Source: Tetramitus jugosus (taxonomy: Eukaryota; Protista; Heterolobosea). Taken from it: a stretch of DNA of 64,000 bases. Under the pieces are notes generated by a model. It saw only the letters and a list, made by a program, of their open reading frames with translations, ran no database searches and was not told the origin of the DNA. Within the stretch, counting starts at the first letter, position 1. Each line of letters starts with the position of its first letter. The DNA lies in contig OW569354.1 in the NCBI GenBank assembly GCA_937625935.1, positions 248,001-312,000 on the forward strand, given 5' to 3'. This document shows, one piece after another, positions 15,070-19,909 of the stretch. Position numbers and translations under genes: made by a program.

Positions 15070-15849
15070 ATGCCAAAACAATCATCATCATCATCACAAC
15101 CGAAACAACAACAACAACAACAACAGAATGATAAACAAGATAAGAAAAAGGGCATGTTTGGTCGTAGAACATGGGATGAACAAGTGTATGCACAAAAGGC
15201 ATCGGATCGTGAAGAACGAATGAACAGTGAAAATGATCACAAGAGAAAACTACCAGTCGCATCGTCAATGTTAGCATCAGAGAGAAAACCATTACAAGCA
15301 CGTTCTTCCACAACAACAACAACTACCACTGCCACTGCCACTACTACTAGTAGTAGTAGTAGTATGGGTGATTTGACAAGAAACGTGGGCAAGAGAACAG
15401 AATTACAGTTTCTGAGTTCAGAGGAAGCAGGAACAAGTGCAATCAGAAGAGTGAACACAAATGACAGTGGATCAACAGGTAGTGGTGGTGGTTTCTATTG
15501 TGACTTGTGTCAATGTTCCATCAAGGACAGCATATCCTACGTGGATCATTTGAATTCACGATTGCACATTTCGAACATGGGAATGGGAATGAGAGCACAG
15601 AGAGCTACACTTGATGCAGTGTTGAAAAAGTTGGATCAACCACCATTGCCTCACAGGAACAGAAACAGGAGAGGCGGTGGTGGAGCAACAGCAACAGCAA
15701 CCACCAGCAGTAGTAGTCGTAGTAGTCGTAGAGATCAAGAAGAAGCAGAATTGGAGCGCAAGGTATTGGAACGTCAATTCTCTCAGGCTCACAAGAAGAT
15801 GAAATTGCATAAAGCACGTAATCAACTACTGATGGATCAATCAGAATAA
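15070..15849 (+). CDS. ZMAT2: Snu23/ZMAT2 matrin-type zinc finger spliceosomal protein
   Basis: RRTWD, LQAR, GFYCDLCQCSIKDSISYVDHLNSRLH and MGM..RATL motifs. Confidence 0.9.
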   Translation: MPKQSSSSSQPKQQQQQQQNDKQDKKKGMFGRRTWDEQVYAQKASDREERMNSENDHKRKLPVASSMLASERKPLQARSSTTTTTTTATATTTSSSSSMGDLTRNVGKRTELQFLSSEEAGTSAIRRVNTNDSGSTGSGGGFYCDLCQCSIKDSISYVDHLNSRLHISNMGMGMRAQRATLDAVLKKLDQPPLPHRNRNRRGGGGATATATTSSSSRSSRRDQEEAELERKVLERQFSQAHKKMKLHKARNQLLMDQSE

Positions 15850-15994
15850 CAACAACAATTGTACATCCAGTGCACATCTCATCACACAATGAATGGATGG
15901 ATGGATACGAACAATGACGAACAACAAGAACAGATGGTGATTGAATCATCAATCATACAATCAGTCATGGTGCATTTTTTGTGGTTTGTTCATT

Positions 15995-18061
15995 TTATTG
16001 AATAATCAAGATGATACCGAGTCCATGAGGGGCCAACGATGATTCCTGAGTCAAATCATAGACGACACTGCTTGGCTTTGCTCGAATACCAATCGAGTAG
16101 GGTGGTAATTCGACTTGAACATTGGGTTCTTCTGATCTGAACCACCGAACTCCGCATCCATTGCCCAAATACGATGCGAACAAAAATCTTTCTTCAATGG
16201 TAGAAACCACTGGTTTCTGTTGTTTCTTGTTCTTGTTGTTGGATGCGAGTGATTGCTGACGAATGGTAATCTTGACAGTCTTCTTGTTGTTGAACTGACG
16301 AGCATAGACGGATGCCAAGTGTTGAACATCATTGACCCATGATTCCAAGTCATCTGAATGAATCTTCAAAAAGAACTCTGGATCCATCTTCAATTTTTGT
16401 TCTTCTTCTTCGTCTTCTTCTTCACCTTGCCTGTCTTCTTCATCATCATCTTCATCATTCTCATCTTCCCCATCTTCCAAGTCATCATAATCTTTACCAC
16501 TGTTCTTGCCACTCATGGCTCTTCTCTTCTTGTTGTTGTTATCGTTAGCTTCTTCTTCTTCTTCATCATCACTATCATTGTCATAGTATTCACCATAGTA
16601 TTTCATCATGAGCAATTGTCTCAATGTTTCTTCCACCATGGATCCAACATCGTTCACTCCAATCTTTTCAATCTCAATGGATGGAAACGTCTTGTACTCC
16701 ATGATCAAATTCTCCAAAAAGTGTTCCATTGTTTTCAATGAATTGCCATCACTGTTTGATTGTTGTTGTTGGCTTCTGTCTACAATGGTGAGATGCTTCT
16801 TCTTAACGTCCTTGAGTTGATCCAATGATGAAAAGACTTGAATATTCTTGTGTTTCTTTAACAGGGCAGAAGCAGAAGCACCAGCAGTTGTTGTTGATTG
16901 ATTCTTGTCCTTGATAGTTGTTGTTGTTGCTGTACTAGCACTAGTAGTAGTACTAGTAGTAGTAGTAGTAGCAGTAGCAGTAGTTGTCGTGTTCCATGCA
17001 GTGTTCTCAATGGCAAGAACAACTTGACTTTTGTTGAATCTTGCACTCTCAATCAAGAATCGATCATTCAATTCATTGTCAATCAATCGAGTACCAATCA
17101 CTCGAAACAAATCAACATTGCACTTGACTGTATCAATGACATGAGCGTGTTCCACTTGATTAATGACACTCAATTTCACTACGAGTTGATCCATTTGTTC
17201 CTCATTCAACAAATCACTAAAATTCAATAGAATGACACTGGATATGTCACATGCAAGTGACAATTTGGCATCATCTCTTCTCACATGAAAATTCTCATTC
17301 TTATTGTTGTTCATCATGTGTTGATGGAGAAAGTGAGCATTGGCAACAGAGACAATCGTATCGAGATAGATGGGTGATGAATACTCGGGGTTCAATTGCT
17401 CTTGTGATGAAATCTCATCAAAATACTCTAGAATATCAGTCAATTCATCCAATGTGTTGACATCTGTGACAATGGCATCAAATGGACAATTCTTTTTTAG
17501 ACCAATATTCTTCAATTGATTCAATCGATTACTCTTATTCTTGTTGTTGTCTTCTTTGAGTGCAAAAATCTTTGAGAAGCATGGTTTGTTTTCATCATCA
17601 GATGATGATGATGATGATGATGACTTTTGTGGTTGATGATTCTGAACAATATCATTGACCAAATCATTGGACAATAGGAATGCAATACTCAATCCCTGAC
17701 AATGATCAATCAAGTGTTGAATGAGTGAAGAACGACCTGCATGAGTAGTGATAGAGTTGAGAAGAATGACTGGAATGGGCAATGGAATATCATCAAGTGC
17801 CATTAATGATTCAAGCAATTCTTGTTTCATCATCATTTGTTGTTGTGGATGATTGTTGTTGTTGTTGTTGTGGTGAGACATTTTTTGTTTCTTATTGTTC
17901 TTGTTTTTTGAATGGGAATCAGATGATGGTGGAGGGACACTTCTCTTTTTGGTGTTGTTATTCTGAGTGTTCTTGTTGTTTTGATTGCTGATGTTCTTGT
18001 TTTTGGCTTTACTCTTGTTGTTGTTACTGCTGCTACTCTTGTTTTGAGTCAATTTTTTCAT
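15995..18061 (-). CDS. Degenerate CobW/COG0523 (G3E GTPase) domain fused to a DUF1826-like domain
   Basis: Segments IPVILLN..GRSSLIQHL, FDAIVTD, YLDTIVSVANA, VILLNFSDLL and INQ..AHVIDTVKCNVDL..VIGT follow the CobW order. C-terminal DVQHLASVYA...VKITI...RFLFASYLGNGCGVRW resembles DUF1826. First ATG is 18061. Confidence 0.65.
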   Translation of the reverse strand: MKKLTQNKSSSSNNNKSKAKNKNISNQNNKNTQNNNTKKRSVPPPSSDSHSKNKNNKKQKMSHHNNNNNNHPQQQMMMKQELLESLMALDDIPLPIPVILLNSITTHAGRSSLIQHLIDHCQGLSIAFLLSNDLVNDIVQNHQPQKSSSSSSSSDDENKPCFSKIFALKEDNNKNKSNRLNQLKNIGLKKNCPFDAIVTDVNTLDELTDILEYFDEISSQEQLNPEYSSPIYLDTIVSVANAHFLHQHMMNNNKNENFHVRRDDAKLSLACDISSVILLNFSDLLNEEQMDQLVVKLSVINQVEHAHVIDTVKCNVDLFRVIGTRLIDNELNDRFLIESARFNKSQVVLAIENTAWNTTTTATATTTTTSTTTSASTATTTTIKDKNQSTTTAGASASALLKKHKNIQVFSSLDQLKDVKKKHLTIVDRSQQQQSNSDGNSLKTMEHFLENLIMEYKTFPSIEIEKIGVNDVGSMVEETLRQLLMMKYYGEYYDNDSDDEEEEEANDNNNKKRRAMSGKNSGKDYDDLEDGEDENDEDDDEEDRQGEEEDEEEEQKLKMDPEFFLKIHSDDLESWVNDVQHLASVYARQFNNKKTVKITIRQQSLASNNKNKKQQKPVVSTIEERFLFASYLGNGCGVRWFRSEEPNVQVELPPYSIGIRAKPSSVVYDLTQESSLAPHGLGIILIIQ

Positions 18062-18194
18062 GAGTGGGTTTGTTTTTCTTGTGCGCTGTGTGTGTGAATT
18101 GTTGCGTTCATGCAATGTTTATGAATGTGATTGAACATTCAATATTTCACATCATGAAAAAGTGAGACCTCGCGTTTTAAAATGGAATAGTTTG

Positions 18195-19047
18195 TTATTC
18201 GTGGGTGAATACAACGCGCAACAGTGTGCAATCATTCATGATGGGTTCTGTTTCACTCAATCGTCTACCATCTTCTGATTCACAGTACCACTTGACTGTT
18301 GTACTCGTCGTGTGTTTCCTGTGCTTTGAATATTCTTGATGTTGCTGTTGTTCTAGCTGCTCTTGTTGTTGTTGTTGTCTGTGTCGATCAAACAGGGGAC
18401 GATATGCCTTGTGAACAAAGGATCGCACCGATGTTCCCTGCTTGATCATGACCACATCTTGAAACATGCCTTGTTTTTGTTCTTCACTCACATGATGTGC
18501 ATCATTGTTATTCTGCTGTTGATGAAGTGCAGTGAGACTGTATGACACGGGATACACTGCAATTTGTTTTTCAAGTTCAATGGCTTTGGCAACAGCTTGA
18601 TACACACCTGTGGTACCATATCGAAACAAGACAAAATCTCTGACATTGTCCAACATGGTCTCATGCTTTTGATTCTCAATGGATTTCAGAGTACTATCAT
18701 CATTCTCACTCTTCTCACTATTCTCACTATTATTATGATTGACACCATTCATGACATCCTTGAGTGTAATAAAGTCATCTGATCCTTCCAAGTAGTGAAT
18801 GTATCCATCAGATGCCATCTTTCTCAAAAAGATTTCAGAGAGTGCAGAAGTGAGAACGATGCGATCCTCGTCATACTTTTTACACAATTTGTCAATATTC
18901 TTTGCAGATGCCTTCATGTCAATCTTGTTGAGGGCAAACACTGTGGGGAATCGAATGCGCAGAAAGTCCCAAACAAATTGACGCACCATACTCTCATCCC
19001 ACGTCTCTATCAAATGTCTCGTCACTACTACTACTGCAGCATTATGA

Positions 19048-19082
<35 letters not shown>

Positions 19083-19909
19083 GTTGTTATTATTATTAGT
19101 AGTATGATTAGTATGATTAGTAGTAGTAGATACAGAGGAATCAAAGTGAGAAAAGCAAAGATTCAACTGCTCGCACAACTCTACCATAAACTTTTTGGAG
19201 CAACCATAGCCACTCAACTGATCAGTCAACGTCTCCACAATACTGCACTTTTTCCTCTTGTGCCTCGATATGATACTGCTCCATCGTTTCCACAAATTGT
19301 TGAATATCCATGCGTGCAACTCTCCATTCAACCAATCAATGTCATGAGAGGGATCGTAGCCCATGGTGACTTGTCCCTTCTCATCCGTTGTTCCACTCAC
19401 ATCCACCACATGGATCAACACGTGTGCATGTCTCAAATCATCTAGGAATTGATTGCCGAGACCTAGTCCTTCCGATGCACCTGGTATGAGACCTGCGACA
19501 TCTAGTAGTTCAACTGGAATGTAACGTGTACCGTCAACACACTTTCCATGATTTGGTCTGCAGTAGGGTTGGAAGAGTGGGAATTGAGAACAGGCACAGC
19601 GTGTTCGATAGAGATGAACACCACGGTTCGGTGCAATGGTAGTGAATGGATAGTTGCCTACTTTGGCTTTGGCTGATGTGGTAGCACTATGTTGGCAATT
19701 CACACATGTGAGTGAGTGAGAGTGATGAAATGTTGTATAATTGTCATAAAATTTACAATGATGATGATTTTGTATTATTATTATTATGATTGTGATTTTG
19801 TATGATGGTGCAAAAGAAGAGGCACATACTTGAGAAAGCTTGATTTACCAGCACTTGGCTTTCCGACGACACCAATGACAAGTGGTTTACTTTTGGAGGC
19901 GTGAGTCAT
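18195..19909 (-). CDS. YchF/OLA1-family P-loop NTPase, archaeal-type YGR210C subfamily (2 exons: 19909-19830, 19686-18195)
   Basis: GKPSAGKS (exon 1), GNYPFTTI, Cys-rich insert CAC...C.P..G.C, DVAGLIPGA..G.GLGNQFLDDLRHA, NKID and GTTGV. 143-nt GTATGT...TAG intron at 19829-19687. Confidence 0.93.
19047..19097. repeat. (AAT/AAC)n trinucleotide microsatellite encoding poly-Asn
   Basis: About 17 tandem TTA/TTG units inside the YchF-like CDS; representative of many similar tracts in the window. Confidence 0.95.

Follow-up and report, generated by a model that had tools for sequence, protein, structure and literature searches.

A conserved protein of Tetramitus jugosus that probably combines a degenerate COG0523 G-domain with a degenerate DUF1826-like domain

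The window analysed here, i.e. the whole stretch of DNA under study, comprises 64,000 nucleotides of the heterolobosean Tetramitus jugosus (GCA_937625935.1, contig OW569354.1, positions 248,001 to 312,000 of the forward strand). The host assembly is eukaryotic, with 56 contigs and 26.35 Mb, few introns and abundant Asn, Gln and Thr runs. An open frame spans 15995..18115 on the minus strand of the window, and its first ATG at 18061 defines an intronless gene for a protein of 688 amino acids. We consider it likely that this lineage-restricted, expressed and conserved protein joins a dead COG0523 G-domain to a dead DUF1826 domain and that it probably acts by binding. From the N- to the C-terminus it would consist of a basic extension, the G-domain, a low-complexity linker and a DUF1826-type domain with an acidic loop. 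The features of the gene and the evidence used to place them are:

15995..18061, minus strand: entire coding sequence, 688 amino acids and the stop codon in a single exon (open frame, ortholog alignment, RNA-library contigs)
17798..18061, minus strand: basic, Lys/Asn-rich N-terminus, residues 1-88, with KKR...KKQKM resembling a nuclear localization signal (sequence, ortholog alignment)
17060..17791, minus strand: degenerate COG0523/CobW G-domain, residues 91-334 (hhalign; ZigA, cobW, ESM and YjiA matches)
17726..17758, minus strand: broken Walker A motif, NSITTHAGRSS (residues 102-112) for GFLGAGKT(T) (profile and ortholog alignments)
17453..17464, minus strand: broken Walker B/switch II, DVNT (in VTDVNT, residues 200-203) for ESTG (in hhhESTG) (profile and ortholog alignments)
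17213..17224, minus strand: broken G4 motif, NFSD (residues 280-283) for NKxD (profile and ortholog alignments)
16859..17002, minus strand: Thr/Ala-rich low-complexity linker, residues 354-401 (ortholog alignment)
15998..16858, minus strand: putative degenerate DUF1826-like domain, residues 402-688 (Pfam, hidden Markov model, hhalign, MAFFT, AlphaFold, ESM Atlas)
16394..16588, minus strand: Asp/Glu-rich loop insert within the DUF1826-like domain, residues 492-556 (ortholog alignment; predicted local distance difference test, pLDDT, 55-67 in the model)
16202..16210, minus strand: VVS at the position of the DUF1826 metal motif H-x-D (FHxD), followed by R625 and Y-x-G-x-G-x-x-W (MAFFT alignment)
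16028..16039, minus strand: SLAP in place of HRSP (manual alignment; the MAFFT alignment is shifted by three columns, and there is no His either way)

The sequence of the gene was found in several soil metatranscriptomes, and contigs from these RNA libraries, compared with positions 15700-18400, are collinear with the window from 15705 to 18075. As the evidence consists of assembled contigs, it indicates presence in RNA libraries and not transcript ends. A contig of 1908 nucleotides from an oligo-dT RNA library (metatranscriptome) covers 15705-16915 and 16996-17530 and thereby takes in the complete C-half with the 3' end, the linker and one half of the N-half; a second contig covers 16996-18005. 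The depth of these contigs is close to zero at 18066-18338, which is compatible with a transcript start near the ATG. The single open frame and the RNA-library contig spanning both halves support that the COG0523-like and DUF1826-like parts are one gene rather than two. Contig joints at 16417-16554 lie in the acidic repeat and have short sides; we interpret them as artefacts of the repeat or as sequence from other organisms, and not as introns.

A word search with the C-half retrieved one full-length relative of 540 amino acids (P0001) from soil samples of JGI/Logan, which carries the JGI label “G3E family GTPase”. It is 38% identical to the window protein from end to end and is devoid of any low-complexity inserts. 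The neighbours on both sides of the gene match those of the window: the upstream neighbour, on the same strand, encodes a YGR210-like Obg-type GTPase (59% identical) and the downstream one, in convergent orientation, a U1-type zinc-finger protein (47% identical). Because the neighbours agree on both sides, we regard this relative as the orthologous protein of a related species. When 1.84 billion representative proteins were searched in full by HMMER with the ortholog as query, nothing was retrieved but its own cluster and P0002, a strain fragment nearly identical to the window protein, and no relatives beyond these two clusters; only two lineages are thus known to have the protein family. No relatives were retrieved by a word search with the N-half, no match by a sequence search of the PDB with the window protein, and no paralog of the fusion gene was found in its own genome, where a weak cobW match (L006) was rejected as a paralog and identified as SRP54.

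Two observations concern the neighbouring genes themselves. The upstream gene (window 18195-19703, minus strand) has a run of about 17 Asn residues that is absent from its ortholog. RNA-library contigs at window positions 15705-15994 cross the intergenic gap of 145 bases and reach the convergent zinc-finger gene (15070-15849, plus strand) at its 3' end, suggesting that both genes have overlapping 3' untranslated regions.

Homology of the N-half to the G-domain of COG0523/CobW proteins is well supported by profile comparison. The family profile was aligned by hhalign with a COG0523 profile of 80 proteins, 79 of them bacterial and one from the host genome, with a probability of 95.5 and an E-value of 1.6e-8 over 208 columns (residues 57-275 of the ortholog to CobW 3-239). 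Single-model searches with the ortholog gave faint signals in the same direction. ZigA is the only NCBIfam match of its N-half (E 0.019; 13.9 bits vs a cut-off of 600) and Pfam cobW (PF02492) is matched with E 0.054 (12-13.5 bits vs a cut-off of 20.7), with FeoB_N, another GTPase family, scoring better than cobW by HMMER (E 0.0036). All top clusters retrieved with ESM features of the window protein are CobW families (0.88). For the moderately confident part of an otherwise low-confidence AlphaFold model based on the family alone, YjiA ranks second with a Z-score of 7.0. A weak structural match (Z 4.9) is Shulin (6zyw_Y); Shulin/DNAAF9 contains a YjiA-like pseudoGTPase domain that is used as a scaffold.

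The functional motifs of this domain are broken in both orthologs. The Walker A segment has an Arg at the position of the Walker Lys and an insertion of one residue, and reads NSLTTKCGRKT in the ortholog; the segment corresponding to GCxCC contains no Cys in either protein; the ortholog has the same DVNT at the ESTG position and NFVD in place of NKxD. Since the losses are common to both orthologs, they are old and tolerated.

For the C-half, Pfam DUF1826 (PF08856) is the sole match of two cuts of the ortholog (E 0.054 and 0.031; 13.8-14.6 bits vs a cut-off of 22). In one-to-one tests, our own hidden Markov model of 13 bacterial DUF1826 proteins matched the ortholog with a p-value of 6e-4 and the window protein with one of 0.04. 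Comparison of the family with DUF1826 by hhalign resulted in P 1.1e-3 (best P 5e-4), and a looser setting with 23 DUF1826 sequences in P 4.4e-3 with collinearity over the full length (15-235 to 6-211). None of 160 column shuffles of the family alignment reached the real score of 31.1 (shuffled maximum 21.4, mean 13.6, standard deviation 2.65). In a reverse search among 5713 open reading frames (ORFs) from bacterial loci, which include 42 DUF1826 ORFs in total, DUF1826 ORFs were found at ranks 4, 12, 14 and 23.

MAFFT alone aligned the family collinearly with the 23 DUF1826 proteins (26 rows including the family). In this alignment LKDVKKKHLTIVDR corresponds to the block L..IY..vNlavW.R, the helix WVNDV..LASVY to the helix D..L...F, VKITI to vgLRL, ERFLFASYLGNGCGVRW to DRVxxRLxTYxGxGTEW and the C-terminal hydrophobic strand to RLLLTLD. 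Within the DRVxxRLxTYxGxGTEW block, the Arg is invariant and both Gly residues and the Trp are nearly invariant over the 26 rows. The ortholog reads STAP at the HRSP position (manual alignment), and its acidic insert is shortened to about 25 residues. We regard it as quite probable from these comparisons that the C-half is a degenerate DUF1826 domain. A preliminary description of this locus, made from the letters and translations of the window, had claimed a single gene in which the N-half keeps the COG0523 scaffold with broken motifs and the C-half follows DUF1826 without CPxFHxD and HRSP. Its anchor strings in the C-half are the blocks aligned here by MAFFT and hhalign; the profile check that it called for came out in its favour with the hhalign P of 5e-4, the shuffle control and the sole, sub-threshold Pfam match of the ortholog; and the transcript and G-domain results given above bear out the rest of this claim.

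In an AlphaFold model of the C-half based on a mixed alignment that includes DUF1826 rows (A4), pLDDT reaches 82.8 and the predicted template modelling score 0.81. Its matches in the PDB are the 2-oxoglutarate (2OG)-Fe(II) oxygenases AtDAO1, AlkB, FTO and PHD2, with E-values from 1.7e-4 and template modelling (TM) scores of 0.25-0.43, and in the ESM Atlas a DUF1826 cluster (TM 0.67). The secondary structure elements of the family-only model, itself of low confidence, occupy the same positions. The most likely fold of the C-half would be a 2OG-oxygenase-like double-stranded beta-helix. DUF1826 itself models as such a 2OG-Fe(II)-oxygenase-like fold, and its HxD...H motifs fit the facial triad; our literature search found no paper assigning DUF1826 to it.

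The basic N-terminus reads KRRNKKKK...RKKQKM in the ortholog, and the clusters resembling a nuclear localization signal are hence kept in both proteins, which would suggest a nuclear location. A nuclear or nucleolar location, as proposed in the preliminary description, may be read from this N-terminus. In place of the Thr/Ala-rich linker the ortholog has a short Pro-rich one; a Pfam New_glue match in the linker of the window protein was dismissed as a spurious hit to low-complexity sequence. The linker is too short to accommodate a CobW_C domain ahead of the DUF1826-like part, and comparison of the C-half with CobW_C (PF07683) by hhalign gave P 0.2 with only 5-9 aligned columns. Judged by these alignments, the fusion protein appears either to lack the CobW_C domain that COG0523 proteins normally have or to contain it in a form beyond recognition, a point that the preliminary description did not mention.

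The host genome also harbors canonical members of both families. Three COG0523 genes have intact motifs (L001:865-2631, minus strand; L002:1489-2880, plus strand; L003:268-1791, minus strand); one of them has an N-terminal tetratricopeptide repeat region, and two combine acidic tails with His/Asp/Glu-rich inserts in the G-domain. An intact standalone DUF1826 gene (L007:1045-1821; 258 amino acids, Pfam E 3e-26, with CSKFHFD and VHRSP) is the only true DUF1826 gene of the host and is located on the same contig, about 75 kb from the fusion and about 28 kb past the end of the window. BLASTP of the C-half against this protein was not significant. A word search with the true DUF1826 protein returned only a near-identical copy of itself, and a related-locus search with it returned no match. 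The search of five DUF1826-bearing bacterial genomes with the C-half alignment gave no result, the method being too insensitive.

In bacteria the two families are neighbours. We compared 52 DUF1826 loci of Pseudomonadota and Myxococcota: 38 have a COG0523 ORF within 1.5 kb, and in 30 cases this ORF precedes DUF1826 on the same strand, as in the domain order of the fusion. Conversely, DUF1826 is present within 6 kb at 14 of 80 COG0523-centred loci. This gene neighbourhood had been put forward in the preliminary description, and our counts agree with the published one (Haas et al. 2009, PMC2770081, Fig. 4) and with the DUF1826 gene that is under Zur control in Francisella (PMC5786701). The same description had placed the origin of the fusion in a eukaryote, a claim that is not supported. 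A cluster in the ESM Atlas contains 58 bacterial proteins of 617 amino acids with cobW in 98%, CobW_C in 95% and DUF1826 in 86%, which is indicative of intact fusions in bacteria. Because of this cluster a fusion event in a eukaryote is not established, and the cobW-DUF1826 fusion may be older than the present protist lineage. Some 60 DUF1826 loci of bacteria, sampled from 866 genomes, included no true cobW-DUF1826 fusion. One candidate with an open frame of 612 amino acids over DUF1826 (L130) was rejected, as the COG0523 and DUF1826 genes are adjacent and in different frames. At this locus of a proteobacterial genome (L130:101-3487), the DUF1826 gene lies between two different COG0523 genes, the upstream one of which stops about five bases before the DUF1826 start. 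Full-text literature searches found three papers mentioning DUF1826 and none linking COG0523 to pseudoenzymes.

The explanation that we favour would derive the protein from the bacterial zinc-starvation gene pair of COG0523 and DUF1826, which is also fused in some bacteria. Its G-domain has lost the Lys and Thr of Walker A, the metal site CxCC, the switch ExxG and the Lys of NKxD, and its DUF1826-type domain would have lost the HxD...H metal triad. GTP hydrolysis, metal chaperoning and oxygenase chemistry would, to judge from these motifs, no longer be performed. Because the nucleotide, metal and oxygenase motifs are all lost in both orthologs, the protein probably works by binding, in the role of an adaptor or regulator whose old surfaces for partners or clients would be retained, possibly in the nucleus; the role of scaffold or sensor put forward in the preliminary description is likewise putative.

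Several observations weigh against this explanation, and we set them out here with the alternatives that they touch. The motifs are the sole basis for the presumed loss of catalysis, and a Gly-Arg remnant of the P-loop and the Asp of G4 survive, which leaves room for nucleotide binding. The protein could hence be partly alive, with a G-domain that, like class ii/iii pseudoGTPases, binds nucleotide without hydrolysis and employs this as a conformational switch, and a DUF1826-like half that binds a ligand or client. Nucleotide-binding pseudoGTPases are documented (PMC5593906, PMC12490416), and the conserved Gly-Arg-(Ser/Lys)-(Ser/Thr) at the P-loop, the conserved Asp at the Walker B position (TDVNT) and the Asn and Asp kept in NFxD would fit such a role. 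However, the Walker Lys is replaced by Arg in both orthologs and the Mg-binding Ser/Thr by Lys in one of them, two glycines of the P-loop are lost and the loop contains an insertion, and the Lys of G4 is a Phe. We therefore rate a nucleotide-binding protein as conceivable, though on the doubtful side.

A second set of observations concerns the assignment of the C-half. Neither half of the window protein or of the ortholog is matched by a family model above the curated cut-off; with the window protein, Pfam and NCBIfam returned nothing above threshold for either half and a low-complexity match only, and Pfam lists neither cobW nor DUF1826 for it. The DUF1826 statistics, in the range of 1e-3 to 1e-4, come from a profile of effectively two sequences, and NCBIfam gives a similarly weak and unrelated match of the C-half, GrdB-like, with E 0.024. 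The family-only AlphaFold model has an overall pLDDT of 38.7 (about 25-30 in the C-half), and the mixed-alignment model is biased by its DUF1826 rows, so that it documents compatibility and is no independent proof of homology. ESM features of the C-half of the ortholog (0.84, 122 shared features) point weakly to CobW_C, and clusters containing CobW_C are also those retrieved for the whole protein. These results would favour a C-half that is not DUF1826 at all but a very divergent CobW_C with extensions, or another, lineage-specific fold, and thus a degenerate full-length COG0523 paralog. We consider this quite unlikely. The short, insignificant CobW_C alignment stands against a best P of 5e-4 and full-length collinearity for DUF1826; not a single shuffle attained the real score; DUF1826 is the only Pfam family matched by both cuts of the ortholog C-half and the one most expected next to COG0523; and the ESM scores that favour CobW_C, below 0.9 with 122 shared features, are treated as leads only.

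The third point is raised by a metagenomic strain variant of the gene (L155), the frame of which is interrupted by three stops (residues 443, 449 and 450) and which the gene caller split there into two genes. They result from three single-base changes, each making a stop, within eight codons (L155:411-440, approximately window 16712-16735). RNA contigs over this position list no such changes, and we treat the triple-stop allele as putative. Elsewhere in the comparison of this contig with the window gene, non-synonymous changes are concentrated in the low-complexity parts, and the last 144 codons, i.e. the structured C-terminus, show four synonymous and two non-synonymous changes. Strain indels listed inside the ORF comprise 3, 6, 12, 6 and 3 bases, all multiples of three; those in the 3' intergenic stretch comprise 1, 2 and 4 bases. 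The C-terminal domain exhibits the strongest conservation, with long identical blocks between the orthologs. Both its conservation and the occurrence of its sequence in RNA libraries show that the fusion gene is no relic. A functionless pseudogene in progress, for which the loss of all catalytic motifs, the stops of the strain variant and a faster evolution than that of the neighbours (38% identity vs 47% and 59%) could be adduced, is highly improbable in view of frames of 688 and 540 codons that are intact in two diverged lineages, the in-frame strain indels, the conserved C-terminal domain, the excess of synonymous changes in structured parts, the occurrence in several soil metatranscriptomes and the RNA contigs over the position of the stops, for which no such changes are listed.

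A comparison with known systems places the putative double pseudoenzyme between several protein families. With the COG0523/CobW G3E GTPases (ZigA, YjiA, YeiR, ZNG1) it shares a homologous G-domain of about 210 residues in which the order of G1, switch and G4 is kept, but Walker A, CxCC, ExxG and NKxD are degenerate, no CobW_C is detectable, and a basic N-terminal extension and the C-terminal DUF1826-like domain are added. The latter is collinear with the whole domain of DUF1826 proteins (PF08856; Zur-linked, e.g. FTN_1758 of Francisella), including the Arg after the HxD block, Y-x-G-x-G-x-x-W and the C-terminal strand. It differs from them by the loss of HxD and of the His of HRSP, by the gain of an acidic insert of 25-65 residues, by a deletion of about 20 residues ahead of the KG strand and by its fusion to a G-domain. 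The bacterial fusions of 617 amino acids (Pseudomonadota), which are known by family annotation, have the same order of GTPase and DUF1826, and the C-half model matches them with a TM of 0.65 over 173 residues; unlike the protist protein, which has no recognisable CobW_C and lacks the motifs, they are matched by all three Pfam families. PseudoGTPases with degenerate G motifs are proteins acting by binding (PMC5593906, PMC12490416), and scaffolds such as p190RhoGAP (pG1/pG2) and AAGAB likewise keep the GTPase fold. The likeness to them would lie in the GTPase fold with degenerate motifs, and the protist protein differs in being of the COG0523 type and in its pairing with a second dead enzyme domain.

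The degenerate variant described here is new, whereas the pairing of COG0523 and DUF1826 was already known. Its reach is limited by the two lineages known to carry the fusion and by a role that we infer. The protein would be one of the rare polypeptides in which two enzyme domains of unrelated kinds have both become pseudoenzymes, and it would add a COG0523-type member to the pseudoGTPases. For DUF1826, an uncharacterised family whose only functional lead is its position beside genes of COG0523 zinc metallochaperones in Zur regulons, the modelled fold suggests a 2OG-Fe(II)-oxygenase-like protein. The fusion of COG0523 and DUF1826, which is apparently intact in certain bacteria and has been conserved in degenerate form in this protist, represents classical evidence for joint action. 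A more far-reaching and, in our view, unlikely interpretation is that COG0523 GTPases and DUF1826 proteins are obligate physical partners and that the protist keeps their complex as one dead polypeptide serving as a nuclear regulator or sensor, e.g. of zinc status or of a former client. If this were true, the protein would be a living “Rosetta stone” that places DUF1826 among the 2OG-oxygenase-like clients or co-factors of zinc metallochaperones.

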